IMG/VR virus record: IMGVR_UViG_3300043570_001980 | Location: 124,001 to 188,000 of that record | DNA: 64,000 nucleotides | Reading direction: 5' to 3' (one strand) | In this document: piece by piece, positions 1 through 13,016 of the stretch | Layout of the letters: each line of letters begins with the position of its first letter | How positions within the stretch are numbered: position 1 is the stretch's first letter | Notes under the pieces: generated by a model | What the model was told of the DNA's origin: nothing | Databases searched by the model: none | What the model saw: the letters and a program-made list of their open reading frames with translations, nothing else | Made by a program: the position numbers and the translations under genes

Positions 1-1083
1 AAAAAACATCAAGTCATCAGATGTGAAGCATATATCTTTCAAGGAGATACTTTTTCCGTTGAACAGGCTGAAAATTTTCTTAAAGAGTACGACACAGACT
101 GTGATACTATTTTAGCTAGTGTGTGGGAAGTACCTTATTATAAAATGTCTACTAACTGGAGACAAGGGTATAAAAACCTAGTACAAACAGCAAAAAGAAA
201 ATTAAAAGGAAGAATTTTTGTTATACTTGATTCCTGGTATCAACCATATTACCAAGACTTGTTAGATCCAGCTGTTGATGATGTTTTGTTAATTGATTAT
301 TTCTTGGTTAGAATCTATAACGAAGTTGTAGTTAAAAAACTATGCGATTTTAAAAAAATACCCGATGTAAAAAATCCATTTTTATTCTTAACTGGCAAAC
401 CATCTAAACTCAACAGAACTCGATTGTTATATAAGTTACAACAGAAGAATTTGTTAGAAAACAGCATATGGTCGTTTTATCCAATTAAAGATAAAATTAA
501 TCAAGAACATTCAACTGTGCCTGAAATAACAGTTGACGAATACATTGATTTTACAAACAAATATCAACGTCAACCAGATAGTGTTAAATTTAAACCGTCT
601 GGCCACTCTTATTTTTTTCTTCCGGTACCTTACGACGTTAAACTTTATGATAGTACAGGTTTTTCAATTGTACCCGAAACTATATTTAATAATACAAATT
701 CGTTTGATACTGTTTTTTTCACAGAAAAAACCTGGATTCCAATATTAAATAATCATGCTTTTATAATTGCTGGAATTCCTGGTGTACTCAAACAACTATC
801 AACTATGGGGTTCAAAACCTTTGAAGAATATTTGCCAGTTAAATATGACAACATACTTAACCACGAACAACGATTAAATGCAATTGTTGAAAACGTGGAA
901 TTTTTAGTTAATAACATCGATGCCCTAGAGAATGATTTAATTAACGATATCAAACACAATCATCAAAATTTAATAAAATTAGCTTGCAATAATGTTGATA
1001 ATATTCTCAATCTTGCCAAACAGCATCAATGGCAAATTAAACAGTTTGACGACCTAGTTAACACCGCTGATAAAATTCTATAA
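1..1083 (+). CDS. Glycosyltransferase-like protein of the ET..TEK paralog family (5' truncated by window edge)
   Basis: Frame is open from base 1; motif FSIVPET...FFTEKTWIPILNNHAFIIAG...GFKTF shared with ORFs at 9222, 31970, 33085 and 46967. Confidence 0.55.
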   Translation, partial: KKHQVIRCEAYIFQGDTFSVEQAENFLKEYDTDCDTILASVWEVPYYKMSTNWRQGYKNLVQTAKRKLKGRIFVILDSWYQPYYQDLLDPAVDDVLLIDYFLVRIYNEVVVKKLCDFKKIPDVKNPFLFLTGKPSKLNRTRLLYKLQQKNLLENSIWSFYPIKDKINQEHSTVPEITVDEYIDFTNKYQRQPDSVKFKPSGHSYFFLPVPYDVKLYDSTGFSIVPETIFNNTNSFDTVFFTEKTWIPILNNHAFIIAGIPGVLKQLSTMGFKTFEEYLPVKYDNILNHEQRLNAIVENVEFLVNNIDALENDLINDIKHNHQNLIKLACNNVDNILNLAKQHQWQIKQFDDLVNTADKIL

Positions 1084-1114
1084 CAATTACAGATTATGGA
1101 TATATAATAGTACT

Positions 1115-1219
1115 ATGAACTATCAATCATTGTCCATGTACACCAAGTGTGACGCACGAGATTTCGTGAGTTACAACTATGAGCACATGTGCAATGCGGG
1201 TCTTGGGAAATCTAGATAA
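1115..1219 (+). CDS. Putative attenuator leader peptide 1 (34 aa, MNYQSLSMYTKCDARDFVSYNYEHMCNAGLGKSR)
   Basis: ATG starts 7 nt after TATAAT (1103-1108), i.e. leaderless; 3' end GCGGGTCTT (1196-1204) is complementary to terminator arm AAGACCCGC (1239-1247). Confidence 0.55.
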   Translation: MNYQSLSMYTKCDARDFVSYNYEHMCNAGLGKSR

Positions 1220-1238
1220 CTAGAAAGTACTGCTAATA

Positions 1239-1270
1239 AAGACCCGCCAACTAGGCGGGTTTTCTTTTTG
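1239..1270 (+). terminator. Intrinsic terminator (attenuator 1)
   Basis: AAGACCCGCC-aacta-GGCGGGTTTT followed by a T-rich tail. Confidence 0.85.
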
Positions 1271-1274
1271 TAGG

Positions 1275-1303
1275 TAGACCAGAATTGACAGATCTAGTAC
1301 AAT
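1275..1303 (+). promoter_or_regulatory. Sigma70-type promoter
   Basis: TAGACC-17 nt-TACAAT. Confidence 0.55.
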
Positions 1304-1339
1304 AGAAACATGAAGGAAGCAATTCCGGGCAACAACAGA

Positions 1340-1358
1340 GTGTTGTAAAAATACAACA
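1340..1358. promoter_or_regulatory. Palindromic operator-like site TGTTGTA-N4-TACAACA
   Basis: Inverted repeat just upstream of a -35 box; recurs at 2656 and, degenerate, at 16701. Confidence 0.6.
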
Positions 1359-1367
1359 AACAAGTAG

Positions 1368-1396
1368 TTGACAAAAATTGCAAAGTATCATATAAT
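1368..1396 (+). promoter_or_regulatory. Consensus sigma70 promoter for tRNA block 1
   Basis: TTGACA-17 nt-TATAAT, perfect consensus. Confidence 0.9.
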
Positions 1397-1406
1397 TGAT
1401 GCATAC

Positions 1407-1434
1407 GTTGAGAAATCAACAATGTTCTTTAACA
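1407..1434 (+). promoter_or_regulatory. boxB-like hairpin plus boxA (rrn-type Nus antitermination site)
   Basis: GTTGA-GAAA-TCAAC hairpin followed by TGTTCTTTAACA (1423-1434), one mismatch from rrn boxA TGCTCTTTAACA, right after the predicted start site. Confidence 0.7.
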
Positions 1435-1470
1435 ATGTTAGAGTTTTTGTATAGTAGCCCGCAAGGGTTG

Positions 1471-1685
1471 CTATATTAAAATGTATTAAAGGTTACCTAC
1501 ACCGTTAGGGATCTACAGCGAGGACAGTGGGGCCGCCCACGCTCAAACTAGGTCTATGAAACCGGGCAGAAATGTCCAGAAAAGCGGCGGAGCATGTAGG
1601 CAGTAATGACCGTGCAGGCCTATACAAGACGGTTGTATAGGTAGACATAGATGCACAATGGTTCCTTTAGTATTTTTTAATATAG
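1471..1685 (+). ncRNA. Unidentified structured RNA A closed by a 22-bp stem
   Basis: 1471-1492 pairs with 1664-1685; GC-rich interior with several hairpins (GTGGG/CCCAC, GGCA-GAAA-TGTC, CCTATACAA/TTGTATAGG). Confidence 0.6.
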
Positions 1686-1693
1686 TAAATTTT

Positions 1694-1783
1694 GGAGCGG
1701 TGGCCGAACGGTAAGGCAGCGGATTGCTAATCCGTACAACGTGTTAAAGCGTTGACTGGGTTCGACTCCCAGTCGCTCCGCCA
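1694..1783 (+). tRNA. tRNA-Ser(GCT)
   Basis: Cloverleaf, long variable arm, anticodon loop TT-GCT-AA, CCA end. Confidence 0.95.
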
Positions 1784-1789
1784 AGTTTT

Positions 1790-1854
1790 GAGAGTCACAT
1801 CGCCTGGATACTTCCTTTGGTAACAAAGCACTAGGTCCTGCAACCGTGGCTCTC
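1790..1854 (+). ncRNA. Unidentified small structured RNA B
   Basis: Nested stems GAGAGTCAC/GTGGCTCTC, CCTGG/CTAGG and CTTTG-GTAA-CAAAG (GNRA loop) between two tRNAs. Confidence 0.5.
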
Positions 1855-1862
1855 CCTTATTT

Positions 1863-1937
1863 GCTCGATTCGTCTATCGGTTAGGACATGCGGTTTTCAT
1901 CCGCATAAGAGCGGTTCGACTCCGCTATCGAGTACCA
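1863..1937 (+). tRNA. tRNA-Glu(TTC)
   Basis: Cloverleaf, TGCGG-TT-TTC-AT-CCGCA, CCA. Confidence 0.95.
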
Positions 1938-1942
1938 GACAT

Positions 1943-2028
1943 GGAGATGTGGCCGAGTGGCTGAAGGCGGCAGACTGTAAATCTGTTCTGTAAAAAGCGC
2001 GGTGGTTCGAATCCATCCATCTCCACCA
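1943..2028 (+). tRNA. tRNA-Tyr(GTA)
   Basis: Cloverleaf with variable arm, CT-GTA-AA loop, CCA. Confidence 0.95.
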
Positions 2029-2030
2029 GA

Positions 2031-2222
2031 ACGTTCCGGATTAGTCTCTGGATACTGTGACCCACAGGATGAGAAGTAGTGTGACAACTACGGGTGGTAG
2101 TCTTTAAACCCAAAGGCCGCTGGCAATGCGATAACGGTTCCTGTCGGGAAGCGGGTGGAAGGAGTGTGTGATGGGTATGATAGCGTCATATCTTGATACT
2201 CTATAATTACCGCCGGGGGATG
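2031..2222 (+). ncRNA. Unidentified structured RNA C (~190 nt)
   Basis: GC-rich, no credible ORF; helices TTCCGG/CCGGGG, CTGTG/CACAG, GTAGT/ACTAC, GGTGGTAG/TTACCGCC, GGAGTGT/ATACTCT. Confidence 0.55.
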
Positions 2223-2318
2223 CAGAGCATTTTTAAGTACATACCCTACGCCTACTTGGAATAGGAGATAGTGTCCATAGCACTGAAGAAAGGTTTAAAT
2301 GTACTTAAAAATGTTTTG
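2223..2318 (+). ncRNA. Unidentified structured RNA D closed by a 20-bp stem
   Basis: 2223-2242 pairs with 2299-2318; two internal hairpins with complementary loops (TGG/CCA). Confidence 0.5.
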
Positions 2319-2471
2319 TTTTTATAGTCAAGCATCGATAAGGTATCGTGTATGGACGCATACACTATTCGGGTCACAGCGGCCGGCGACTGATCCTGAT
2401 ATAACTGCATCGGCTTTGACACGGAAGCACCGGACGTCTAAATTGGCATTCTCGGTGCTTGACTATAAAAA
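2319..2471 (+). ncRNA. Unidentified structured RNA E closed by a 20-bp stem
   Basis: 2319-2338 pairs with 2452-2471; GTGTATG-GACG-CATACAC hairpin whose loop can pair with downstream CGTC. Confidence 0.6.
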
Positions 2472-2474
2472 TTT

Positions 2475-2550
2475 GGTCTTAAAGTGTTCATGGACGCACG
2501 ACGGCTTGTCACGCCGTAAGAGTGGGGATCGTTACCCCCTAAGACCGCCA
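2475..2550 (+). tRNA. tRNA-Asp(GTC)
   Basis: Cloverleaf, TT-GTC-AC loop, atypical T-loop ATCGTTA, CCA. Confidence 0.9.
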
Positions 2551-2572
2551 ACATAAAAACTCTAACTTTTAC

Positions 2573-2647
2573 CGCGGGGTACGTCAGTGGTAGACCGCCA
2601 GGCTCATAACCTGGAAGCCGGAGGTTCGAGTCCTTCCCCCGCAACCA
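2573..2647 (+). tRNA. Initiator tRNA-fMet(CAT)
   Basis: C1-A72 mismatch, CGCGGGG 5' end, CT-CAT-AA loop, CCA. Confidence 0.92.
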
Positions 2648-2655
2648 ACACAGGA

Positions 2656-2675
2656 GTGTTGTATAAATACAACAC
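2656..2675. promoter_or_regulatory. Palindromic operator-like site GTGTTGTA-TAAA-TACAACAC
   Basis: Perfect 8-bp inverted repeat upstream of the promoter at 2695. Confidence 0.6.
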
Positions 2676-2694
2676 AAAATTTTTACCTTAGAGG

Positions 2695-2723
2695 TTGACT
2701 CTAAGACATAAATAAAGTACAAT
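2695..2723 (+). promoter_or_regulatory. Sigma70 promoter for leader 2 / tRNA block 2
   Basis: TTGACT-17 nt-TACAAT; the -35 box sits inside the inverted repeat CTTAGAG/CTCTAAG. Confidence 0.8.
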
Positions 2724-2733
2724 AGAAACTAAG

Positions 2734-2865
2734 ATGAACAAGCATTTCACATTATCGTTGAAACCCATTATGCACCAGACAGCATCTGCCTGGTCACGCG
2801 GTTTTAATTTTAACTGTGGGATTACAATTCCAGGTACGCAGGGGTCCGTAGGAGACAAGATGTAA
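2734..2865 (+). CDS. Putative attenuator leader peptide 2 (43 aa, MNKHFTLSLKPIMHQTASAWSRGFNFNCGITIPGTQGSVGDKM)
   Basis: ATG near the predicted start site; GGGGTCC (2841-2847) is complementary to terminator arm GGACCCC (2889-2895); the stop codon lies inside the alternative hairpin. Confidence 0.6.
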   Translation: MNKHFTLSLKPIMHQTASAWSRGFNFNCGITIPGTQGSVGDKM

Positions 2866-2888
2866 TAAAAATACATCAAATTCTAAAA

Positions 2889-2924
2889 GGACCCCAGGAC
2901 TAAAAACCCTGGGGTTTTGTTTTT
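2889..2924 (+). terminator. Intrinsic terminator (attenuator 2)
   Basis: GGACCCCAGG-loop-CCTGGGGTTT followed by a T tract. Confidence 0.85.
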
Positions 2925-2933
2925 AAGGAACAA

Positions 2934-3119
2934 ATGATTAGAGAAGAAAGTAAAACTGAACATAAGTGTGTTTACACAGAAATTGATCAAAGAGCCAACG
3001 AAGGACTAGGGTACGCACTCACTCCCGAGATGACAAAAAAATTGATTGAAGGTAAATTCACAAGAATGCAACTGCTAACAGGCAATCGAAATAGAGTGAT
3101 TGAAACTAGCAAAGCATAA
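2934..3119 (+). CDS. Hypothetical protein (61 aa)
   Basis: AAGGA Shine-Dalgarno before ATG; first gene after attenuator 2. Confidence 0.6.
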   Translation: MIREESKTEHKCVYTEIDQRANEGLGYALTPEMTKKLIEGKFTRMQLLTGNRNRVIETSKA

Positions 3120-3293
3120 AGTGTGCATAGGCAACGCGAGCCTGACCTGCACTTAAAACATGGGCAAATGGGCGGCCTGTAGGATGAAGCTTCTTTTGTG
3201 AAGTGAAAAATTACAGCGTATTAAAGCATTCTTTAAGAACAGGCAGCCTAAGTATTTTAGAGTGCTTTAATACATACATTCCTCGGAGTGTGT
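3119..3293 (+). ncRNA. Structured intergenic RNA F including a 15-bp processing-type stem
   Basis: GTGCA/TGCAC, AGGC/GCCT and CTGTA/TACAG helices; 3218-3232 pairs with 3259-3273. Confidence 0.4.
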
Positions 3294-3305
3294 TAACTAT
3301 TTTAT

Positions 3306-3381
3306 TCCTTGATAGCTCAGTTGGTAGAGCACTTGACTGTTAATCAAGTTGTCCCTGGTTCGAGCCCAGGTCGAGGAGCCA
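3306..3381 (+). tRNA. tRNA-Asn(GTT)
   Basis: Cloverleaf, CT-GTT-AA, CCA. Confidence 0.95.
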
Positions 3382-3387
3382 GATATA

Positions 3388-3463
<76 letters not shown>

Positions 3464-3468
3464 TTTAT

Positions 3469-3545
3469 ACCACCTTAGCTCATTTGGATAGAGCACCAGG
3501 CTACGAACTTGGGGGTAGGGCGTTCAACTCGCTCAGGTGGTACCA
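3469..3545 (+). tRNA. tRNA-Arg(ACG)
   Basis: Cloverleaf, CT-ACG-AA, CCA. Confidence 0.92.
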
Positions 3546-3551
3546 GTTTTT

Positions 3552-3626
3552 GGGGGATTGGTATAGTTGGGAACACAGTAGCTTTGCAAGCTTCAGTCAG
3601 CGGTTCGACCCCGCTATCCTCCACCA
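3552..3626 (+). tRNA. tRNA-Ala(TGC)
   Basis: G3-U70 pair, TT-TGC-AA, CCA. Confidence 0.93.
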
Positions 3627-3679
3627 ACAAATTTTTAAGGAGAGTCCAAATGGACAGTGATAAGAGTGGTAAGATTTGT

Positions 3680-3755
3680 GGGACGTTAGCTCAGTTGGTA
3701 GAGCAGTAGACTTTTAATCTATTGGTCATTGGTTCGAATCCAATACGTCCTACCA
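3680..3755 (+). tRNA. tRNA-Lys(TTT)
   Basis: Cloverleaf, CT-TTT-AA, CCA. Confidence 0.95.
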
Positions 3756-3872
3756 TATAAAAGCATTCTTGGCGTAAGTCAAAGCGGGAGAAGAAGCTGA
3801 GTATCTGCAGATGCAAAAGTTTCAGCAACTAGATTGCCTCCTAGGCCTGCTGTTGAGAGTGCCTCTATATGG
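3753..3872 (+). ncRNA. Unidentified structured RNA G closed by a ~22-bp stem
   Basis: CCATATAAAAGCATTCTTGGCG pairs with TGTTGAGAGTGCCTCTATATGG; internal GCTGA/TCAGC and CTAG/CTAG helices. Confidence 0.5.
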
Positions 3873-3946
3873 TAATATAGCATAGTGGCTAATGCAGTTG
3901 CTTCATACGCAACCTATCGTTGGTTCGAGTCCAACTATTACCACCA
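3871..3946 (+). tRNA. tRNA-Met(CAT), elongator (Ile2 not excluded)
   Basis: Fully paired acceptor stem, TT-CAT-AC, CCA. Confidence 0.85.
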
Positions 3947-3954
3947 GGCTTTGT

Positions 3955-4031
3955 TGGAGATTCGCCAAGTTGGTCAAGGCATCGGATTTTGATTCCGACA
4001 CGCATAGGTTCGAATCCTATATCTCCTGCCA
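3955..4031 (+). tRNA. tRNA-Gln(TTG)
   Basis: Cloverleaf, unpaired 1-72, TT-TTG-AT, CCA. Confidence 0.93.
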
Positions 4032-4037
4032 GATTTT

Positions 4038-4112
4038 AGCCGTGTAGCTCAGAGGAAGAGCATTGTCTTGATAAGGCAAGGGTCGACATTTCGAAACTGT
4101 CCATGGCTACCA
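4038..4112 (+). tRNA. tRNA-Ile(GAT)
   Basis: Cloverleaf, TT-GAT-AA, atypical T-stem, CCA. Confidence 0.88.
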
Positions 4113-4130
4113 ATATAAGTAAATTACAAT

Positions 4131-4204
4131 GCGGGGTTCGTATAGTGGTAATACCTGAGCCTTCCAAGCTCATGCGGAGAGTTCGATTCTCTTACCCCGC
4201 TCCA
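4131..4204 (+). tRNA. tRNA-Gly(TCC)
   Basis: Cloverleaf, CT-TCC-AA, U73, CCA. Confidence 0.95.
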
Positions 4205-4210
4205 GGTTTA

Positions 4211-4285
4211 GGGTGATTAGCTCAGCGGTAGAGTCGCTGCCTTACACGCAGTTTGTCGGGAGTTCGATCCTCTCATCACCCACCA
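4211..4285 (+). tRNA. tRNA-Val(TAC)
   Basis: Cloverleaf, CT-TAC-AC, CCA. Confidence 0.95.
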
Positions 4286-4291
4286 GTTATT

Positions 4292-4368
4292 CGGAGTGTA
4301 GCACAGCCTGGTAGTGCGCCTGGTTTGGGACCAGGAGGTCGTAGGTTCGAATCCTACTATTCCGACCA
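4292..4368 (+). tRNA. tRNA-Pro(TGG)
   Basis: Cloverleaf, TT-TGG-GA, CCA. Confidence 0.95.
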
Positions 4369-4373
4369 ATTAT

Positions 4374-4451
4374 GCAACGGTGGCAGAGTGGTCAAATGCA
4401 ACGGATTGCAAATCCGTAAAGTCGTGAGTTCAAATCTCACCCGTTGTTCCA
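4374..4451 (+). tRNA. tRNA-Cys(GCA)
   Basis: Cloverleaf, TT-GCA-AA, U73, CCA. Confidence 0.93.
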
Positions 4452-4455
4452 ATTT

Positions 4456-4529
4456 GTATCCATAGTGTAATGGCAGCATTGCGGTCTCCAAAACCGTCAG
4501 TCTAGGTTCAAGTCCTAGTGGGTACGCCA
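4456..4529 (+). tRNA. tRNA-Trp(CCA)
   Basis: Cloverleaf, CT-CCA-AA, CCA end. Confidence 0.93.
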
Positions 4530-4551
4530 GTATTAAATATAAGAAAGCCAT

Positions 4552-4989
4552 ATGATAAAAGAAACACAAACAAGAACAATAGTAAAAGCAGTTATATACA
4601 GATTTTTCTCAGTGGTAGCTATCATGTTGTTATCACTGCTATTCGGCGCTAGCATGGCATCGGCTGGCATAGTCGGACTAATTGTAATTGTGGTAGGTAC
4701 AGCAATTTATTACGTACATGACAGGTTGTGGTTGCTTACTGGATGGGCAAGAAACGATTCAGGGGTTGACGATATCAAACGTAGTGTAATTAAAACCATT
4801 ATCTATCGTGCAATCACCATGACGGTTTCTTACTTGATTGCAATATTCATTATTAAAAGCAGTGGGTCCAACGCTGTGCTATTTGCAATAGCACAGGCAT
4901 TGACAAATATGACTTTTTTCTTTATTGTTGAGAGAGTATTTAATTTTATTGAATGGGGAAAAATTAAACCTGAATCTCAGGTAAATTAA
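4552..4989 (+). CDS. Membrane protein with two DUF2061-like repeats
   Basis: Tandem RTIVKAVIYR...YYVHDRLW and RSVIKTIIYR...FFIVERVFNFIEWG units. Confidence 0.75.
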   Translation: MIKETQTRTIVKAVIYRFFSVVAIMLLSLLFGASMASAGIVGLIVIVVGTAIYYVHDRLWLLTGWARNDSGVDDIKRSVIKTIIYRAITMTVSYLIAIFIIKSSGSNAVLFAIAQALTNMTFFFIVERVFNFIEWGKIKPESQVN

Positions 4990-4992
4990 TTA

Positions 4993-5084
4993 GGAAGCGT
5001 GGTCGAGTCAGGTTTATGGCAACAGTCTTGAAAACTGTCGGCTCTTAACAGGGTCCGTGAGTTCGAATCTCACCGCTTCCACCA
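4993..5084 (+). tRNA. tRNA-Ser(TGA)
   Basis: Long variable arm, CT-TGA-AA, CCA. Confidence 0.95.
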
Positions 5085-5098
5085 AATTGGAGTATTCA

Positions 5099-5383
5099 AT
5101 GTCAAACGAAACCGATAAATTCAAACATAGCAAGCGTCTACAGAAAGACAAAAACGCTGTTAACAAACAAATCAAAATTGCCAAAGAATTTGGGATACCA
5201 GTTGAAGAGCCACATAAGTTTGCCAAACATCATGCCATGAACTGTGGCACCCCAAATTGTGTGATGTGCAGTAATCCTAGAAAAACCTTTAAAGAGTTGA
5301 CACAGCAAGAGAAACGAATGTTTCAGGACACCGATACTCCTCGTGATCGACACAGCAATGGATTGCCGCCTGATCAAGATTAA
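5099..5383 (+). CDS. Hypothetical basic phage protein with a C-x4-C-x2-C motif
   Basis: GGAG SD then ATG at 5099; HAMNCGTPNCVMCSNPR. Confidence 0.75.
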   Translation: MSNETDKFKHSKRLQKDKNAVNKQIKIAKEFGIPVEEPHKFAKHHAMNCGTPNCVMCSNPRKTFKELTQQEKRMFQDTDTPRDRHSNGLPPDQD

Positions 5384-5388
5384 TCTAT

Positions 5389-5464
5389 GGTGACTATAGT
5401 GTAACGGTCAACACCACGGATTGTGATTCCGTTAATATGGGTTCGATTCCCATTAGTTACCCCA
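5389..5464 (+). tRNA. tRNA-His(GTG)
   Basis: G-1:C73 pair, TT-GTG-AT, CCA. Confidence 0.95.
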
Positions 5465-5466
5465 AT

Positions 5467-5542
5467 GCCAAGATAGCTCAGTTGGTAGAGCACCGGACTG
5501 AAAATCCGGGTGTGGGCGGTTCGATCCCGTCTCTTGGTACCA
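5467..5542 (+). tRNA. tRNA-Phe(GAA)
   Basis: Cloverleaf, CT-GAA-AA, CCA. Confidence 0.95.
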
Positions 5543-5543
5543 A

Positions 5544-6008
5544 TTACTGAGTGATCTGGCCTGTTACAGCATCTACATGCACAGGTTGGCGACCATCAAA
5601 TGTAAAATCATAAAAAGGATTTCCTCGATAATCAACAGTTTGACGCAACCTGCAAAACAGCCAGGTGTCTGTAATACCTGCTTTGGTCATGGCCTGCTGT
5701 GCCTGATTACAACTCAGGGTAGGTGGATATACAAATGCCTGACACTCAGCCACACGGGAGTCATCAAACGTGGGGCCAGTAGCATGTCCTGTAATGTCAA
5801 CAGTTATAGCATAAGGTTTGGTATCTTCGGATCCTTGCCAGCAGGTATACATAGTTCCATTACGGTCAGCCTCAGCAAGATAAAATTTAGATCCGTTTTG
5901 ATGTAGATCCATAAGGCTCTTGGCTCCCCAGATCTGTTGATCAAAACTCAAGGGAGACAACAACCCTAGTCGTCGAAAATATTGTCTTATAAGTGTTATT
6001 ATTGACAT
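5544..6008 (-). CDS. Hypothetical protein with a PepSY-like C-terminus, inserted antisense in the tRNA array
   Basis: AAGGA SD, TAAATA upstream; C-terminus ...VHVDAVTGQI. Confidence 0.7.
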   Translation of the reverse strand: MSIITLIRQYFRRLGLLSPLSFDQQIWGAKSLMDLHQNGSKFYLAEADRNGTMYTCWQGSEDTKPYAITVDITGHATGPTFDDSRVAECQAFVYPPTLSCNQAQQAMTKAGITDTWLFCRLRQTVDYRGNPFYDFTFDGRQPVHVDAVTGQITQ

Positions 6009-6034
6009 AATTACATTTCCTTTTGTTGATATAT

Positions 6035-6238
6035 TTATCTGGTTAGAATAGCGGCCTTTAGAGGTTCGATTCCGTCTCTTGGTACCAACAATGGATCAGG
6101 AATAAACTTAGGTTTGGATGTATTCAACAGTGGGTCAGGAACAAATACACGATGTGTACTATGGTAAGTTGGAGAAATATAAGACTGTTTTGCCGATTTC
6201 TCATACAATATGTCAGTAGATGTGTTACAATCAATCAT
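6035..6238 (-). CDS. Hypothetical protein (67 aa) with a F(V/I)PDPLL repeat
   Basis: TAAATA-cagt-ATG context; C-terminus reads antisense through the duplicated tRNA-Phe 3' end. Confidence 0.45.
   Translation of the reverse strand: MIDCNTSTDILYEKSAKQSYISPTYHSTHRVFVPDPLLNTSKPKFIPDPLLVPRDGIEPLKAAILTR
6063..6088 (+). repeat. Direct repeat of the tRNA-Phe 3' end (att-like scar)
   Basis: GGTTCGATTCCGTCTCTTGGTACCAA matches 5518-5543 at 25/26 positions. Confidence 0.85.
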
Positions 6239-6250
6239 ACTGTATTTAAA

Positions 6251-6327
6251 GCCCCGGTGACGGAATTGGTATACGTGTTGGTCTTAGAAGCCAAATTTTA
6301 GGAGTTCGAGTCTCCTCTGGGGCACCA
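6251..6327 (+). tRNA. tRNA-Leu(TAG), short variable loop
   Basis: CT-TAG-AA loop, Leu-type D arm, A73, 77 nt only. Confidence 0.88.
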
Positions 6328-6360
6328 ATTTAGCATATATAATAGAACAAAGGAAGCATC

Positions 6361-7140
6361 ATGAAGAGACTTTTTGTAATGCTTGTATTACTTGTTAGCA
6401 TACCCTCTTATGCATTTCCTAGCAATTCAAGCATTCTGGTATTGGATGTAAATTCCAACCACCCACGATATGTACATAATGGCGAGCAAGTTCGTTCTAT
6501 TGCCAGCATTACTAAATTAATGACTGCAATGGTAACCCTTGACTACGATAAAGATCTAAGTAGAAAACTTTTGCTCAGTAATCGTGTCACGAGCAGTTTA
6601 CCTAAACAATATTATACCAGACACGAGCTGTTAAATGCAATGTTGGTTCGCAGTGATAATGCCGCTGCCGAAACCATTGCTGAAGATTATCCTGGCGGTA
6701 GACACGCATTTGTTAAACAAATGAACCTACATGCCAAAATGTGGGATATGAACAATACTGCATTTATTGATCCAACTGGCCTGGGCGTGTTCAATGTCAG
6801 CACAGTATATGATGTGGCCAACATGATACAAACAGCATCCAGTTATTGGTTTATCAGAGAAACATCAGTTAAAAAGAATGTTGCCATTGCTACCCTAGCC
6901 AAAAAGAAAACACGAACTGTAAATTTAAACAATACCAATCAATCACTGTTATTTAAATTTGACAATATTGTAATCAGCAAAACTGGTCTTACCAGTGCCG
7001 CCGGTTGGTGTATGAGTTTGTTTGTAACGGAAAAAGACAAAGACTACATAATTGTAGTACTAGGAAGTAAAAACAAAAACGAAAGAACAGCTACAGTAAA
7101 GGACATCATGTATAGCCATGTACTTGATCCCAACTCGTAA
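6361..7140 (+). CDS. D-alanyl-D-alanine endo/carboxypeptidase (peptidase S11, PbpG/DacA-like)
   Basis: Signal peptide; SxxK (ASITK), SxN (SDN) and KTG motifs. Confidence 0.9.
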   Translation: MKRLFVMLVLLVSIPSYAFPSNSSILVLDVNSNHPRYVHNGEQVRSIASITKLMTAMVTLDYDKDLSRKLLLSNRVTSSLPKQYYTRHELLNAMLVRSDNAAAETIAEDYPGGRHAFVKQMNLHAKMWDMNNTAFIDPTGLGVFNVSTVYDVANMIQTASSYWFIRETSVKKNVAIATLAKKKTRTVNLNNTNQSLLFKFDNIVISKTGLTSAAGWCMSLFVTEKDKDYIIVVLGSKNKNERTATVKDIMYSHVLDPNS

Positions 7141-7151
7141 CCAAGGTAACC

Positions 7152-7622
7152 ATGAAAAAAATCAATCTAGAAGAAGTCAAGAGCTTTATTGAAGCACAAG
7201 GGCCAGATACTAAAATTTATCTAGGCTGTGACTCTGAACGTATGCGCATTGATGGTCAATGGCATGCTGACTATGTCTTGGCTGTTGTTGTACACATCAA
7301 CGGAAATAACGGTTGCAAGTTATTTGGTGAAGTACAACGTGAACGTGATTACGATCACAAAGTCCATAGGCCAGCAATGCGCCTTATGTCCGAAGTGTAT
7401 AAGGTCAGCGAGTTGTACCTAAAGCTAGCAGATGTACTTGAAGGTAGACAGGTTGAAGTACACTTAGACATTAACCCCGATGATCAATATGGATCTAGCT
7501 GTGTTATCAGCCAGGCCATTGGCTATATCAAAGGAACATGTAATGTTGTACCGTTTGTTAAACCCGATGCATTTGCTGCCAGCTATGCTGCCGATCGTTT
7601 CAAAAGTTTGAAAGTAGCCTAA
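7152..7622 (+). CDS. RNase H-like YkuK family protein
   Basis: KIYLGCDS...RLMSEV...EVHLDIN...KPDAFAASYAADR pattern. Confidence 0.75.
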   Translation: MKKINLEEVKSFIEAQGPDTKIYLGCDSERMRIDGQWHADYVLAVVVHINGNNGCKLFGEVQRERDYDHKVHRPAMRLMSEVYKVSELYLKLADVLEGRQVEVHLDINPDDQYGSSCVISQAIGYIKGTCNVVPFVKPDAFAASYAADRFKSLKVA

Positions 7623-7624
7623 GA

Positions 7625-7777
7625 ATGCCAATGTACGAAACCACTGTTAGAACACCGCAAGGTGAAGAGAAGAAAAGAATATATGCACAGGACGTAAAAG
7701 AAGCCAAAAAGCTTTTTGAACAACTGTATGGTGGACCAAGAGCAGTTCCGTACATTCCACATATGGTGCCAAGTTGA
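7625..7777 (+). CDS. Hypothetical protein (50 aa, not in the ORF track)
   Basis: MPMYETTVRTPQGEEKKRIYAQDVKEAKKLFEQLYGGPRAVPYIPHMVPS fills the gap between the YkuK gene and tRNA-Gly. Confidence 0.65.
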   Translation: MPMYETTVRTPQGEEKKRIYAQDVKEAKKLFEQLYGGPRAVPYIPHMVPS

Positions 7778-7778
7778 T

Positions 7779-7852
7779 GCGGGTATGGTGTAATGGTAAC
7801 CCGAAACCTTGCCAAGGTTTAGTTGAGAGTTCGATTCTCTCTGTCCGCTCCA
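7779..7852 (+). tRNA. tRNA-Gly(GCC)
   Basis: Cloverleaf, TT-GCC-AA, U73, CCA. Confidence 0.92.
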
Positions 7853-8544
7853 AGCTTCATTGACAATCGTTCAGCAAAAACTCGATGCCTGTCAATGCCC
7901 GGATGGCAAAGGTCTCTACCAAGTGAATTAGAGTAGCTTGATGTGAGTGCGTTAGCATTAACTGTAACACACTTGATTCCTTTGGCAGTACACAGCATTT
8001 GTATACCTAATGTATTTTTTTCAGTGTTGAAATAATTGTTATTTTCGTCTACTGTCCAAAGTTTAATAAACTCTTTTGTTGATGGATCTTCAATATCTAC
8101 ATTTTTAATATTATCGTTGGTTACCAGTTCACATCTTATGCCCGGAGGTTGCATAAAAATAACTGTGGTTGGATTAATTTTATCTAGCCATCCATGACAT
8201 AACCTAAATGCTGTATCAGCGGAGGAGCCGGCAATGCCAAGATTAACACATTGTAAATTTAGATTTGTTGATACTAACTCAGGCCAAATTAAGTCTACAG
8301 GTAACCCCATGCCCATTGTAAAACTACACCCAAGAAACATGATACTAGGTTTGTCAGTAAACTCTTTACACCTAAACCCATGTGAGTTAAATTCATATGT
8401 AAAGTGATTATCTATCCAGCCCTGTAGTACTAGATCACCGTGGCGTTTGTCAAGATTTTTCTTGTATAATTCTTCAGTGTCCATGGGCAACCAGTCTACA
8501 GTTTTGTTAGCAAGATTTTTATAAAAGGAATCATAATTAGGCAT
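7819..8544 (-). CDS. SGNH/GDSL-like hypothetical protein, antisense in the tRNA array
   Basis: FLGCSFTMG, NLGIAGSS and DLCHPG motifs; last codons overlap tRNA-Gly. Confidence 0.7.
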   Translation of the reverse strand: MPNYDSFYKNLANKTVDWLPMDTEELYKKNLDKRHGDLVLQGWIDNHFTYEFNSHGFRCKEFTDKPSIMFLGCSFTMGMGLPVDLIWPELVSTNLNLQCVNLGIAGSSADTAFRLCHGWLDKINPTTVIFMQPPGIRCELVTNDNIKNVDIEDPSTKEFIKLWTVDENNNYFNTEKNTLGIQMLCTAKGIKCVTVNANALTSSYSNSLGRDLCHPGIDRHRVFAERLSMKLGADRENRTLN

Positions 8545-8585
8545 GTTTTTATTTACACTAAAACTTTATCAATATTACAAATTCT

Positions 8586-8659
8586 GCTCTCATAGTATAA
8601 TGGCATTACACGCCCTTGGTAAGGGCGAAACACAAGTTCAATTCTTGTTGAGAGCACCA
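8586..8659 (+). tRNA. tRNA-Thr(GGT)
   Basis: Cloverleaf, TT-GGT-AA, CCA. Confidence 0.92.
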
Positions 8660-8662
8660 TAT

Positions 8663-8737
8663 CGGCCCTTGGTGAAATGGATATCATTCCAGGCTTCGAA
8701 CCTGGAGGTGGGAGTTCGATCCTCTCAGGGCCGGCCA
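8663..8737 (+). tRNA. tRNA-Arg(TCG)
   Basis: Cloverleaf, CCAGG-CT-TCG-AA-CCTGG, CCA. Confidence 0.9.
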
Positions 8738-8790
8738 TTATATTAGTCTTTAATATTAAATACACACATAACGTCATATATAAGGTTACC

Positions 8791-9225
8791 ATGCTACACT
8801 TTGTCCAATCATTCACAGATAACATCATTGAACTGCTCAAAGAAGATCCAGTTCGCCCTCACATCCCTACTAGTAGTCGCATAGGCACAAACAGAGATAT
8901 ATTTGTGCTTCGTGATGAAAATGGTAAAGCCAAAGCTATCACTTGTGCTAGCTATCAAAACATTATCCCGCTTGATGAAAGCGAATTATTTGAACCAGTT
9001 ACTGATCCTAGTGTAGTAGTTTTTTATACTATTTGGAGTTATGCACCCGGTGCAGGTCGTGAACTTATTCTAGACGCAGTCAAACACATAAGAGAAAACA
9101 AACCCAATATTAAAAGATTTGTTACTCTGAGTCCTCCCACAGAAATGGCTAAAAAATTCCATATTAAAAACGGTGCAAACACTTTTAGAATTAACAATTT
9201 GACTATCAATTACGAATACCCATGA
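8791..9225 (+). CDS. Hypothetical phage protein, GNAT-like fold suspected
   Basis: Start reassigned to ATG 8791 because the upstream extension overlaps a tRNA; FYTIWSYAPGAGRELI...FVTLSP...FHIKNGA. Confidence 0.65.
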   Translation: MLHFVQSFTDNIIELLKEDPVRPHIPTSSRIGTNRDIFVLRDENGKAKAITCASYQNIIPLDESELFEPVTDPSVVVFYTIWSYAPGAGRELILDAVKHIRENKPNIKRFVTLSPPTEMAKKFHIKNGANTFRINNLTINYEYP

Positions 9226-10397
9226 ACATCACCAACGAAGATGTTGTTAGGTACATTAGAACAAGTCAACAACCAACAGATTACAAAATAGTCTGTAGAA
9301 TTGGCGATGATTTGATATCCAACACTGATACGTTAAATTCGGCTGAATTAAAACAGTTTGTTTTTTCTACACTTGATACATTAACACAACATTTTGATTT
9401 TGGTACAAGTTTTGCACAGCCTGTGGCTATATTGTACCAAGAATACATCAGCGAAGAGTTAATGGTTTATCTGCATCAGTGGTTACGCACAAAATGTGCT
9501 GATATAGAAAACATCACTGTGGTGTTAGGTCAGAGTTTGGGAATGAAAGAATGGTGGAAAGAATGGTGTAGCATTTATCACGAAAAATCTTTTTTAATTG
9601 TTGAGTTGTCTTGGGCCTATTGCGAGTGTGCTTATCGTACTTGTTTTAGCCCGAGTGAATTTGTTAGTCATCCAGACATAGTCTCTGAAAAAAATAAAAT
9701 GATGCAATATCATTTTAGTTACTGGGCAGGTGGTACAAAACACTACAATGATAGATCATACATTGCCATGCGAGTATTGGAGTTTTTAGATTATTGTTTA
9801 TTTGATAGTCTGTATAAATTACCATCAAAACAACTGCTATTAGACTATGCAGAACAAATCACTTATTTTAAAAGTCAGGACACTATTGATTTAATATCAT
9901 CATTGTATGACACAAAAGTCAACAGCGATGGTGAGGTTAAAATAAAAAATATCAACAACAATACTGCAATTAAAAAAAGAGTTCAGCAATTTTGTTTTGT
10001 TGATAGTTTTACATGGAATAACAACCGCTGTTGCTTTGCTTCGGTGATCAGAGAAACAAAAAACAATGATTTACATCAAGAATTCACAGAGAAAACTATG
10101 AGAGCTTTTTGGCATCATTTGGTAGCTATACCTCTTTGTTATAATGCAGTAAGTAATTTAGAAGCACAAGGATTTTGGTTCCCGCATGACTTGATTGATT
10201 ACAGATATCAAGGAGTGCGTGATTTTCACGAAAGGGTATCATTGGCAATGCAATCAGTTAAAAAGTTAATTGCAGATCACAGCATTAATGATTTAAAAAA
10301 CTATTACAACAATCACACAGAACACTTTTATTACAATGCTAAATTAATAAAAGACTTAGGCGATGACTCGCAACGCCTACATCAAAAATACATTTAA
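9222..10397 (+). CDS. Glycosyltransferase-like protein, ET..TEK family
   Basis: ASVIRET...FTEKTMRAF...GFWFP motif. Confidence 0.55.
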   Translation: MNITNEDVVRYIRTSQQPTDYKIVCRIGDDLISNTDTLNSAELKQFVFSTLDTLTQHFDFGTSFAQPVAILYQEYISEELMVYLHQWLRTKCADIENITVVLGQSLGMKEWWKEWCSIYHEKSFLIVELSWAYCECAYRTCFSPSEFVSHPDIVSEKNKMMQYHFSYWAGGTKHYNDRSYIAMRVLEFLDYCLFDSLYKLPSKQLLLDYAEQITYFKSQDTIDLISSLYDTKVNSDGEVKIKNINNNTAIKKRVQQFCFVDSFTWNNNRCCFASVIRETKNNDLHQEFTEKTMRAFWHHLVAIPLCYNAVSNLEAQGFWFPHDLIDYRYQGVRDFHERVSLAMQSVKKLIADHSINDLKNYYNNHTEHFYYNAKLIKDLGDDSQRLHQKYI

Positions 10398-10405
10398 GGA
10401 TTAAC

Positions 10406-10654
10406 ATGGCAAGAATTACATCAGAAGATGCAGTAGAACAAGTTGGTAATCGATTTGATCTTGTGCTAATTGCAAGTCGCAGAGTTAGAGAACTTCGCAA
10501 CGGCTATCGCTCTCACATTGCTTCCACAAATGGAGCATTGGTTACTGCTCTTAAGGAAATTGAAACAGGACATGTGGGTAGAGAGTATTTGTTAAAACCT
10601 ACAGAAGTGAAAAATCCCGACCGTCGACCCAGACGTTCAGACAAAGTTTTTTAA
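10406..10654 (+). CDS. rpoZ: RNA polymerase omega subunit
   Basis: MARITSEDAVEQVGNRFDLVLIASRRVREL...ALKEI is the omega signature; AAGGA SD. Confidence 0.93.
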   Translation: MARITSEDAVEQVGNRFDLVLIASRRVRELRNGYRSHIASTNGALVTALKEIETGHVGREYLLKPTEVKNPDRRPRRSDKVF

Positions 10655-10657
10655 TGC

Positions 10658-10859
10658 AATAGTTAAAGGCGTGAGCGAAAGAAAGCCTAGCCAGCAGATC
10701 CTAACTACCAGGGAAGTGATCACCCATAGCCTACTGTAGCCGATATACTGGCCGAGCCAAGTGGCACTTGGTTGAACATGCTGATGGGAGTGTTACGGCA
10801 ACGCTGATACCGTTGATAAAACCTAATGCTTTAAACACAGGGTAGTGCCTTTAACTATT
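10658..10859 (+). ncRNA. Unidentified structured RNA H (~200 nt) after rpoZ
   Basis: AATAGTTAAAGGCG pairs with TGCCTTTAACTATT; GC-rich interior with hairpins; no ORF; strand assumed from context. Confidence 0.55.
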
Positions 10860-10876
10860 TTTTATTACAAAAACAG

Positions 10877-10905
10877 TTGACTGGTAACTCAAACAATTGT
10901 ATAAT
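10877..10905 (+). promoter_or_regulatory. Sigma70 promoter
   Basis: TTGACT-17 nt-TATAAT. Confidence 0.85.
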
Positions 10906-10926
10906 TTAAGTTAAAGAAAGGAGGGC

Positions 10927-11517: not shown

Positions 11518-11518
11518 T

Positions 11519-11956: not shown

Positions 11957-11964
11957 TCAATAAG

Positions 11965-12036
11965 TAAGAGTTATTGCTGTATGAAGCAAAGAGAAAAGTG
12001 TTCTGGACGGGGGTGCGAATCCCCCCAGGTCCACCA
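11965..12036 (+). ncRNA. ssrA: Two-piece (permuted) tmRNA, acceptor piece (5' end approximate)
   Basis: GGAC-GGGGG-TGCGAAT-CCCCC-CAGGTCC-A-CCA; pairs with downstream GGGCCTG giving G3-U70. Confidence 0.92.
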
Positions 12037-12047
12037 AAAGGATTTTT

Positions 12048-12316: not shown

Positions 12317-12317
12317 A

Positions 12318-12344
12318 GAGACCCGCTTCGGCGGGTTTTCTTTT
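12318..12344 (+). terminator. Intrinsic terminator after tmRNA
   Basis: GAGACCCGC-TTCG-GCGGGTTTT plus T tract. Confidence 0.9.
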
Positions 12345-12995: not shown

Positions 12996-13016
12996 TTTCT
13001 AGTAGATTAGATTAAA

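Follow-up and report, generated by a model that had tools for sequence, protein, structure and literature searches.

Candidate leader-peptide attenuators in front of the tRNA gene blocks of a lake jumbo phage and its relatives

Two short leader open reading frames (ORFs), each ending inside an RNA helix that competes with an intrinsic terminator, precede the two tRNA gene blocks of a 342-kb jumbo phage from lake metagenomes and of its many relatives. This arrangement suggests that the phage probably switches on its own tRNA genes when ribosomes slow down, a form of control that has not been described for tRNA genes in the literature we could search. The window analyzed here is a stretch of 64,000 nucleotides (positions 124,001 to 188,000 of IMG/VR record IMGVR_UViG_3300043570_001980), and the promoters, leaders, terminators, and tRNA blocks described below lie on its plus strand. 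The preliminary description of this region proposed paired attenuators whose codons mirror the tRNA blocks that they precede. Its sequence observations all hold upon re-examination, and comparison with relatives strengthens them, whereas its interpretation is only partly supported.

Results

Architecture of the two units

The first unit begins with a sigma70-type promoter at 1080-1108 (ATAACA, 17 nt, TATAAT), and the ATG of leader ORF 1 (1115-1219, 34 codons) lies 7 nt after the -10 hexamer, so that the mRNA is predicted to be leaderless. A 9-nt strand at 1196-1204 (GCGGGTCTT) is complementary to AAGACCCGC at 1239-1247, which forms most of the 5' arm of the intrinsic terminator T1 (1239-1272; a G+C-rich 10-bp stem at 1239-1248/1254-1263 followed by a T run). 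Enclosed by this pairing is an inner hairpin at 1211-1224 (TCTAG/CTAGA) with the TAA stop codon (1217-1219) in its loop. The terminator is followed by tRNA block 1 (1694-2647), which encodes Ser(GCT), Glu, Tyr, Asp, and initiator Met tRNAs with conserved non-coding elements between them; the tRNA-Met at 2573-2647 displays the C1:A72 initiator mismatch. Two sigma70-type promoter-like sites (1275-1303 and 1368-1396, the second a perfect consensus) lie between T1 and block 1, are conserved at this place in relatives, and can bypass T1, as the preliminary description had cautioned. An ORF at 1310-1348, behind the first of these promoters, initially resembled a further unit, but its ATG is AAG in relatives and we rejected it.

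Block 1 is followed by an AT-rich hairpin with a T run (2656-2675), a weak terminator-like site, and then by the second unit. Its sigma70-type promoter (2695-2723; TTGACT, 17 nt, TACAAT) places the ATG of leader ORF 2 (2734-2865, 43 codons) 10 nt after the -10 hexamer, and this is the only such combination of promoter, short ORF, and terminator genome-wide. The antiterminator of this unit has three tiers: P1 (2841-2847/2889-2895, GGGGTCC with GGACCCC), P2 (2849-2853/2881-2885), and P3 (2859-2864/2872-2877), with the stop codon (2863-2865) at the P3 loop. P1 uses the 5' arm of the intrinsic terminator T2 (2888-2925; G+C-rich stem 2888-2898/2908-2918, T run), which a simple hairpin scan missed because its conserved loop is 9 nt long, but which further analyses recovered. 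In the window, the antiterminator state is predicted at -22.7 kcal/mol and the terminator state at -17.7 kcal/mol.

Immediately after T2 lies a 61-codon ORF with a Shine-Dalgarno motif (2934-3119), which is present in about half of the related loci and whose function is unknown, and then a conserved structured non-coding element (3120-3305) without an Rfam match, the first product downstream of T2. The first contiguous run of tRNA block 2 follows at 3306-4529, with 13 tRNAs from Asn to Trp, and the array continues to 8737. No promoter-like site scoring 10 of 12 or better lies between T2 and the first tRNA of block 2, in agreement with the preliminary description, although one clade of relatives does have a promoter after T2.

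To assess whether the upstream structures exceed chance, we compared all 43 intrinsic terminators of the 342-kb genome. T2 ranks 2nd for upstream structure (z -4.6), but T1 ranks only 12th (z -2.0), so T1 taken alone would not stand out. Neither leader nor the 61-codon ORF matched a family in Pfam or PHROGs.

Conservation of the second unit

The preliminary description had named conservation of ORF, antiterminator, and terminator geometry, with covariation, as a criterion for its proposal, and loss of the ORF or of the complementarity in homologous arrays as grounds against it. Cultured relatives were not informative: nucleotide and protein searches of the phage collection returned only tRNA-level matches, including a hit to Pseudomonas phage RVTF4 that was tRNA similarity only. 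The DUF2061 gene at 4552-4989 also failed as a synteny anchor, because relatives at 80% identity or less carry it outside any homologous leader context. A 17-mer from the element downstream of T2, however, retrieved 69 IMG/VR loci with 51 distinct upstream sequences, of which 44 carry T2 by our detector and 5 more carry it with an 11-nt loop, giving 49 of 51.

Every one of these has an ATG ORF of 34-51 codons ending 18-36 nt before T2. Among the 44 detected homologues, the ORF frame contains no in-frame stop, against 3.2-3.3 stops on average in the other two frames. In one class of leaders the promoter lies 6-10 nt before the ATG, whereas the other class has no promoter there but an AAGG/GAGA Shine-Dalgarno-like motif. 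In 44 of 44 loci the nascent RNA folds so that the T2 5' arm is sequestered, with a mean z-score of -3.7 against dinucleotide shuffles, and the stop codon lies inside the region enclosed by P1 in all loci. The reading frame across P1 differs between lineages, yet the stop codon stays in P3.

P1 shows G-C/A-U/G-U exchanges at three positions, with 1 non-pair in 196 cells, and 0 of 2000 column shuffles reach the observed pairing; one such exchange separates the window from its closest relative. Because three MAFFT alignments put a subset of rows one column out of register at P1, these pairs were counted anchored on the invariant CCC and on the helix ends, and neither formal pair counting on the alignment nor a covariance model was used. 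The T2 stem likewise covaries across the family.

These data bear on the possibility that the leaders are ordinary small-protein genes with ordinary terminators, the extra helix merely stabilizing the mRNA 3' end or being a by-product. Phage tRNA regions are known to hold small ORFs, the ORFs here are conserved with their own promoters or Shine-Dalgarno motifs, and some residues are conserved (Trp in leader 2, an A-Y-E-x-D motif in leader 1). However, the peptides match no family in Pfam or PHROGs and diverge very fast: substitutions are spread evenly over the three codon positions (3123/2689/3042), without a third-position excess, and synonymous changes are only mildly enriched. The peptide is therefore barely constrained, and the coding argument rests on ORF persistence. 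In addition, the helix uses the terminator's own 5' arm, so the two structures cannot coexist, and it covaries, while the stop codon keeps its place even where the frame across P1 has shifted. We consider this reading very unlikely.

A non-coding switch, in which the P1-P3 helix and the T2 loop are bound by a phage or host factor, as in protein-dependent antiterminators or riboswitches, and the ORF is incidental, appears similarly improbable. The weakly constrained peptide, the strongly conserved structure, and the conserved T2 loop (AYUAAAMAC), which is unusual for a plain terminator, would fit such a switch. Against it, the ORF is open in every locus despite indels, a start codon sits at the predicted transcription start or behind a Shine-Dalgarno motif, and the stop codon is fixed in the helix. 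A cmscan search of positions 1-14000 against Rfam 15 at E up to 1 gave no T-box or riboswitch match, and no hit within 1103-2924; the only leader hit was a sub-threshold Trp_leader match elsewhere, at 12956-13045 (22.5 bits against a gathering score of 41, E 0.91).

Conservation of the first unit

The leader 1/T1 module recurs in 17 distinct loci with the same design and, like the second module, is conserved in relatives with compensatory changes. ORFs of 30-34 codons follow the same promoter layout in all 17 (TTGACT, 17 nt, TATAMT, 5-6 nt, ATG), the antiterminator forms in the nascent-RNA fold of 17 of 17, and the stop codon lies 9-22 nt after the start of the P1 5' strand. Relatives have a different inner hairpin (TGTAGT/ACTACA), again with the stop codon in the loop. 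In the related locus L010, frame and length are kept although 10 of 34 residues differ. In three lineages, by contrast, a T1-like terminator simply ends an ordinary gene, with no leader. A scan of all fetched loci found only variants of the two leader types, among them a variant of unit 1 in locus L053 that behaves the same way.

Codon content of the leaders and the downstream tRNAs

The tRNA identities and codon counts of the preliminary description are correct: leader 1 has 4 Tyr, 2 Asp, 1 Glu, one AGT Ser, and 3 Met codons; leader 2 has no Tyr, Glu, or AGY codon; and distinct codons number 29 of 34 and 31 of 43. The high codon diversity that it emphasized is, however, significant only for leader 1 (P 0.013, against 0.11 for leader 2).

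For leader 1, the proposed mirroring of codons and tRNAs is well supported. The 12 codons before the antiterminator strand, a candidate regulatory window (1160-1195, DFVSYNYEHMCN), are rich in Tyr, Glu, and Asp, and across the family these make up 80 of 204 codons here (39%) against 8 of 217 (4%) earlier in the leader, with a background of 16.5%. Glu, Tyr, and Asp tRNAs are the nearest tRNAs downstream of T1 in every locus with downstream sequence, with Tyr further off or not seen in one clade. In evolutionary terms, this match is essentially one inherited event.

For leader 2, the mirror is weak. The suggestion that this leader avoids Tyr and Glu fails in the closest relative, which has both. 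The preliminary description had asked whether leader codons track the downstream anticodons better than shuffled controls; leader-2 codons are no more matched to the nearby tRNAs than are ordinary phage genes, the own-versus-other signal comes mostly from one deep split between two classes, and tracking within a class is not significant. One Trp codon (2791-2793) is invariant across the family, while the neighboring Pro and Ser codons vary synonymously. RNA pairing is an unlikely cause of this invariance, as TGG pairs with different partners in the two leader classes and the partner varies while TGG does not. The last 18 codons also contain a modest excess of codons for the first 3-5 downstream tRNAs (0.27 against 0.16), with weak permutation support. 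A cluster of candidate regulatory codons just upstream of the antiterminator strand is present in leader 1, but the single Trp codon and slight excess in leader 2 do not settle whether the two units share this feature.

Discussion

We consider it most likely, with moderate confidence, that two separate ribosome-dependent transcription attenuators of the trp/his type stand at the heads of the phage's two tRNA blocks. In this model, host RNA polymerase starts at a sigma70-type promoter whose start site falls on, or a few bases before, the leader's ATG. As the leader is transcribed, its 3' end would fold with the 5' arm of the terminator into the antiterminator helix, which, left alone, forms first and is at least as stable as the terminator, such that the default outcome is read-through. 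A ribosome that translates the leader promptly to its stop codon would unwind the 5' strand, allowing the terminator to form and transcription to stop before the tRNA genes. A ribosome delayed on leader codons, with the Tyr/Glu/Asp cluster in leader 1 and the invariant Trp plus neighboring codons in leader 2 as candidates, would leave the antiterminator intact, and the polymerase would run into the tRNA genes. The outcome would be negative feedback, with poor decoding giving more phage tRNA.

Of this model, our analysis demonstrates the ORFs, the two mutually exclusive structures with their conservation and covariation, the position of the stop codon, and the codon cluster with its matching tRNAs; that the leaders are translated, that ribosomes stall on them, and that stalling raises read-through is inference, with no direct evidence of translation, stalling, or regulated read-through. 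Assembled metatranscriptome contigs cover part of 2627-2940 and none of 2941-3097, which is consistent with ends at T2 but is weak evidence; such contigs show neither ribosome occupancy nor transcript 3' ends. The logic also differs slightly from the preliminary description, in which a stalled ribosome frees the antiterminator: no upstream strand pairs with the P1 5' strand in the folds examined, so the antiterminator is free by default and the terminating ribosome removes it. Class II leaders do have a hairpin that includes the Trp codon, but it does not overlap P1. No anti-antiterminator, the 1:2 helix of the trp leader that enforces termination when the leader is not translated, was found; untranslated transcripts would read through, and leaderless initiation may be inefficient in a Gram-negative host. 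Given the strong promoters after T1, and the promoter after T2 in one clade, the attenuators are not the only route to the tRNAs.

A less likely but possible alternative is that the same RNA switch reads only how closely the first ribosome follows the polymerase, that is, overall initiation and elongation capacity, and not particular tRNAs; the conserved Trp and the Tyr/Glu/Asp cluster would then serve another purpose, for example slowing the nascent chain, or be inherited by descent. The read-through default, the background-level codon match of leader 2, the many different codons used, and the leaderless starts, which make the switch sensitive to initiation, are in line with this view. On the other hand, Tyr/Glu/Asp codons are concentrated tenfold just upstream of the antiterminator in leader 1 and exactly those tRNAs lie downstream; between the window and L010, Tyr and Asp codons are lost in the distal part of the leader and Asp codons are gained in the proximal part; and the Trp codon of leader 2 is invariant.

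More tentatively, each block could be gated by a leader peptide whose regulatory codons are read by the tRNAs encoded just downstream: Tyr/Glu/Asp codons before the tRNA-Glu/Tyr/Asp genes, and Trp and others before the main array. Loss of those host tRNAs, whether through anticodon nucleases, host shut-off, or starvation, would then switch on their phage replacements. This would be the first case of tRNA genes controlled by ribosome-mediated attenuation, and a built-in sensor for tRNA-directed defense; the link to anticodon nucleases, drawn in the preliminary description, was not examined here.

If confirmed, attenuation would show that large phages do not simply express their tRNA arrays constitutively but meter them against the cell's actual decoding capacity, that the arrays have a natural way to respond to tRNA-cleaving host defenses, and that phage tRNA genes could stay cheap when the host pool suffices. 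It would also provide a compact, portable sensor of about 200 nt with sigma70-type promoters, for which more than 60 natural variants with compensatory changes are available.

Phage tRNA arrays serve as a counter-measure to tRNA-cleaving defenses, for example the T5 tRNA-Lys that neutralizes PARIS (PMC11464382), and the replacement of host tRNAs gives a biological reason for demand-driven expression, although no regulatory leader has been described for such arrays in the papers we could search. Leader-peptide attenuation itself is a textbook mechanism for amino-acid biosynthesis operons, a few synthetase genes, and resistance genes, but we found no description of it in phages within the same literature. 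The trp, his, leu, thr, ilv, and pheA attenuators of enterobacteria likewise combine a short leader ORF, an intrinsic terminator, and an antiterminator that uses the terminator's 5' arm, with a ribosome at the stop codon masking the antiterminator strand and a cluster of codons for the sensed amino acids 10-35 nt upstream of that strand, which applies here to leader 1. The phage units differ in that they precede tRNA genes, are leaderless or nearly so, lack a detected 1:2 helix, mix three amino acids in the regulatory cluster of leader 1, have only one invariant codon in leader 2, and match no Rfam leader family.

The pheST (pheM leader) attenuator of E. coli similarly stands in front of a component of the translation apparatus that serves the very codons in the leader, but it is cellular, senses one amino acid, and controls an aminoacyl-tRNA synthetase; this parallel was not tested here. 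T-box riboswitches are also cis-acting terminator/antiterminator switches that report on the state of a tRNA and control translation-related genes, but they bind uncharged tRNA directly through a specifier loop and the T-box sequence, with no ORF, and neither these features nor the stem I architecture is present here. Finally, in ribosome-mediated attenuators that sense translation inhibitors, such as the leaders of mef/msr(D) and similar resistance genes (PMC4335068), stalling within a short leader ORF decides between terminator and antiterminator in response to slowed translation rather than amino-acid supply; those leaders sense drug-stalled ribosomes and control resistance genes, whereas here the proposed signal is decoding capacity and the output is tRNA.

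Genomic context

The window covers bases 124001-188000 of a single 341,990-bp contig with 40.7% G+C, which carries 28 tRNA genes and a permuted (two-piece), betaproteobacterial-type tmRNA gene. The latter lies at window positions 11944-12365 and encodes the tag ANDSQFALAA, hinting at a betaproteobacterial host. No cultured phage is close, as searches of the phage collection returned only tRNA-sized matches. Near-identical and roughly 90% identical contigs do occur in IMG/VR, however, and the sequence is present in many lake-water metagenome runs. It is therefore an uncultivated freshwater jumbo phage. Elsewhere in the window, a run of radical-SAM-like ORFs and a carbamoyltransferase-like ORF (35301-50073, minus strand), plus a 2430-codon ORF further on (56532-63824), looks like a peptide- or sugar-modification gene set and is unrelated to the units described here.

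Two leader-terminator units precede the tRNA blocks

Every statement made about the sequence in the preliminary description proved correct. ORF1 (1115-1219, 34 codons) and ORF2 (2734-2865, 43 codons) are both present, and each is followed by an intrinsic terminator: T1, a 10-bp stem at 1239-1263 with a T run, and T2, an 11-bp stem at 2888-2898/2908-2918 with a 9-nt loop and a T run. GCGGGTCTT (1196-1204) is complementary to the T1 5' arm, and GGGGTCC (2841-2847) is complementary to GGACCCC (2889-2895), which overlaps the T2 5' arm, with both stop codons sitting in the small hairpin enclosed by that pairing. The tRNA identities, residue counts, and distinct-codon counts that had been given are likewise right. 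Promoter-like sites precede both ORFs so closely that the ATG falls at or within 3-4 nt of the expected start site, and two further promoters (1275-1303 and 1368-1396, the latter a perfect consensus) lie between T1 and block 1, the first tRNA block. A 12-codon mini-ORF at 1310-1348, behind the promoter at 1275-1303 and with its stop codon in a hairpin, at first resembled a third unit, but its ATG is AAG in relatives, and it is probably meaningless.

The arrangement is clearly not due to chance. Among the 43 intrinsic terminators that we could call in the genome, T2 ranks second for structure in the 75 nt upstream (z -4.6), although T1 ranks only twelfth (z -2.0). A TTGAC-type promoter followed within 11 nt by an ATG, a short ORF, and a terminator occurs once in 342 kb, at leader 2. 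For T2, the antiterminator state is more stable than the terminator state (-22.7 against -17.7 kcal/mol) and is part of the unconstrained minimum-energy fold, whereas for T1 the two states are similar (-18.0 against -16.7).

Unit 2 is conserved in related loci

Conservation of the ORF and of the antiterminator and terminator geometry, with covariation, had been put forward in advance as a test of the attenuator reading, and homologous arrays lacking the ORF or the antiterminator complementarity would have spoken against it. The closest diverged relative (locus L010, about 90% identical) keeps ORF2 in frame and length with 7 of 43 residues changed, and it shows one compensatory exchange, in which GGGGTCC/GGACCCC becomes AGGGTCC/GGACCCT. 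To collect a wider set, we used a 17-mer (3227-3243) from a conserved structured non-coding element of about 190 nt (3120-3305), which lies directly after T2 and a 61-codon ORF, just before the first tRNA of block 2. This element has an invariant GGGCGGCC, a 15-bp helix, and a covarying hairpin, has no Rfam match, and is the first product that T2 would gate. The search retrieved 69 IMG/VR loci, giving 51 distinct upstream sequences. Our detector found a T2 homolog in 44 of these, five more have it with an 11-nt loop, and only two loci have a different, divergent gene arrangement. In one clade (loci L035, L039, L046, L060, and L082), the leader-2 unit has a 5' untranslated region of about 60 nt, an 11-nt T2 loop, and a TTGACA-17-TATAGT promoter between T2 and the conserved element, so that T2 can be bypassed there. 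The T2 loop itself (AYUAAAMAC; 2899-2907 in the window) is conserved across the family, which is unusual for a plain intrinsic terminator and is unexplained.

In every case, an ATG ORF of 34-51 codons ends 18-36 nt before the terminator arm. Frame 0 has no stops, while the other two frames average 3.2 and 3.3 stops over the same stretch, and only 2 of the 88 alternative-frame stretches are open. The loci fall into two classes: in class I, which includes the window, a TTGAC-17-TAYAAT promoter ends 6-10 nt before the ATG, whereas in class II there is no promoter at this place, but an AAGG/GAGA Shine-Dalgarno-like motif lies 8-18 nt upstream. A start signal of one kind or the other is thus always present.

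We folded each nascent transcript up to the end of the T2 5' arm. In 44 of 44 loci, that arm pairs with the 3' end of the leader, forming a three-tier helix that consists of P1, P2, and an apical hairpin P3, which holds or adjoins the stop codon (mean z-score of -3.7 against dinucleotide shuffles). P1 pairs were then counted anchored on the invariant CCC and, separately, on the helix ends. Three P1 positions exchange G-C, A-U, and G-U, with one non-pair in 196 cells among 28 non-redundant sequences, and none of 2000 column shuffles reaches the observed pairing. These exchanges occur in separate lineages: between the window and L010, within class II, and in loci L029, L080, L081, L086, and L018. 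The T2 stem itself also covaries. The reading frame across P1 differs between lineages (GGG TCC in some, AGG GTC C in others), yet the stop codon remains in P3, indicating separate constraints on the RNA helix and on where translation ends.

The peptide encoded by leader 2, by contrast, is barely constrained. Pairwise differences are spread evenly over codon positions (3123/2689/3042), and among codons that differ at one base, 34% of changes are synonymous, only a little above what we would expect for unconstrained sequence. This is what one expects of a leader whose translation matters but whose product does not, but it also means that the case for translation rests on ORF persistence, start signals, and stop placement. 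One residue is invariant, a single Trp, while the adjacent Pro and Ser codons vary synonymously. RNA pairing is an unlikely reason for this invariance, because TGG pairs with different partners in the two classes, and the partner varies while TGG does not. tRNA-Trp lies downstream of the unit in every locus long enough to tell, and in most class I loci (not the window's own lineage) it is the first or second tRNA.

Unit 1 in relatives

A pattern built on T1 retrieved 27 loci, giving 17 distinct sequences. All have TTGACT-17-TATAMT, then 5-6 nt, then an ATG and an ORF of 30-34 codons, and all have a P1 helix between the end of the leader and the T1 5' arm, with a stop codon in the loop of an inner hairpin. 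The sequence of this inner hairpin differs from that of the window (TGTAGT/ACTACA against TCTAG/CTAGA). The T1 arm is paired upstream in all 17 nascent folds (z -1.3 to -4.2). In three other lineages, however, a T1-like terminator simply ends an ordinary gene and there is no leader; hence, the terminator is older or more general than the attenuator. In L010, about 2.2 kb with three minus-strand ORFs is inserted (10973-13067) between the 320-codon ORF and leader 1; leader 1 and its promoter stay with the tRNA block and not with the upstream gene.

Codon content of the leaders and the downstream tRNAs

Whether leader codons track the downstream anticodons had also been named beforehand as a check. 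In the 12 codons before P1 of leader 1, Tyr, Glu, and Asp make up 80 of 204 codons (39%), compared with 8 of 217 (4%) in the earlier part of the same leaders and a genome background of 16.5%. The arrangement differs between clades (SYELAYESD, AIYEIAYERD, NDLYAYERED, EQAYEHDY, SEALDYD, and, in the window, DFVSYNYEH), but the composition is kept throughout. Between the window and L010, distal Tyr and Asp codons are lost, two Asp codons are gained near P1, and Tyr and Glu codons change synonymously. In every locus with downstream sequence, the nearest tRNAs after T1 are Glu, Tyr, and Asp, preceded by Ser(GCT) in the window lineage and by Leu in one locus; in one clade, Tyr lies further off or is not seen. 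A further leader-1 variant, in locus L053, has the run CEREYD and stands before the tRNAs Glu, Tyr, Asp, Asp, and Cys. Two related phages (loci L105 and L110) carry, about 1.5 kb after their T1, a tRNA with a CTA anticodon (amber-suppressor-like) in the array, which may point to stop-codon reassignment in part of the family. The candidate regulatory codons of leader 1 lie 15-30 nt upstream of the antiterminator strand, the same geometry as in the trp leader, and a ribosome held on them would leave P1 free. Because the module is inherited as a unit, this is close to a single evolutionary observation. Even so, the chance that the three enriched amino acids are exactly those of the three nearest tRNAs is about 1 in 1140, and we consider the correspondence well supported for leader 1.

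For leader 2, the evidence is weak. In the window, leader 2 has 1 codon read by block-1 tRNAs where 8.1 are expected (P 0.0013), but L010 has gained both a Tyr and a Glu codon. Across 22 leader clusters, leaders match the first 3-12 downstream tRNAs of their own locus better than those of other loci (for example, 0.32 against 0.27 for the first eight), with very low permutation P values. The difference persists when permuting within classes (P 0.002-0.02) and is concentrated in the 18 codons before P1. The effect is small, however; the own-locus match does not exceed what ordinary phage genes would give (0.315 against 0.301), and in non-overlapping pairs the positive contrasts are mainly those that cross the deep split between class I and class II. 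We regard a codon correspondence for leader 2 as unproven. The split is itself coherent: class I genomes have Glu/Tyr/Asp tRNAs in a separate upstream block, behind the Tyr/Glu/Asp-rich leader 1 where that region was seen, and their leader 2 is poor in these codons (about 5%), whereas in class II, where these tRNAs follow leader 2, its proximal part reads Y-W ... D-R-T-P-E. In locus L034 (minus strand of the locus, leader at 8359-8467), a T2-type unit stands in front of an Asp-Glu-Asn-Tyr-Cys tRNA block, and its leader ends in SYLRSVNNVDC, which contains codons for Tyr, Asn, Asp, and Cys.

A model for ribosome-dependent attenuation

The anatomy of both units fits ribosome-dependent attenuation, with one difference from the trp paradigm. 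No upstream strand competes for the 5' strand of the antiterminator, so that in this model the antiterminator would form by default, and termination would require a ribosome that has reached the last third of the leader by the time the polymerase transcribes the 3' arm of the terminator. Any delay of the first ribosome, including delay on the Tyr/Glu/Asp cluster of leader 1 or on Trp and its neighbors in leader 2, would then give read-through into the tRNA genes. In the window lineage, block 2 has no recognizable promoter other than the one in front of leader 2, so T2 could gate the whole main array. T1, in contrast, is followed by strong promoters and can at most add an inducible component to a constitutive one.

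Metatranscriptome contigs from lakes cover part of 2627-2940 and none of 2941-3097 in four runs, which fits 3' ends at T2, although these are assembled contigs, in which a gap proves nothing. Other conserved non-coding stretches between the tRNA genes (1454-1693, 2029-2474, and 3756-3870) are shared with many relatives and are present in lake metatranscriptome contigs, with 2051-2195 reaching a word depth of 338-535. They have no Rfam match and may be unknown stable RNAs.

Taken together, the observation in the preliminary description is confirmed, while its interpretation, a sensor of the tRNA pool whose leader codons mirror the downstream tRNAs, is supported only in part. The ORFs, the alternative RNA structures, their conservation, and the codon cluster of leader 1 are observed here, whereas the switching itself is inferred from them. 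The attenuator reading is the best-supported explanation, and we hold it with moderate confidence; a version that senses only general translation speed is its main rival. The suggested connection to anticodon nucleases remains a hypothesis.

Comparison with known systems

The units are not T-boxes and match no Rfam leader family, and the peptides match nothing in Pfam or PHROGs. Full-text literature searches, which did not extend to older subscription papers (for example, on the phage T5 tRNA region), found no description of leader-peptide attenuation in front of tRNA genes or in phage tRNA arrays. The units resemble trp/his-type leader-peptide attenuators and have most of their defining features, although the 1:2 helix is missing and function was not assayed. 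We therefore consider the proposed kind of regulation to be a known one, of which these units would be a new form acting on a new class of regulated genes.
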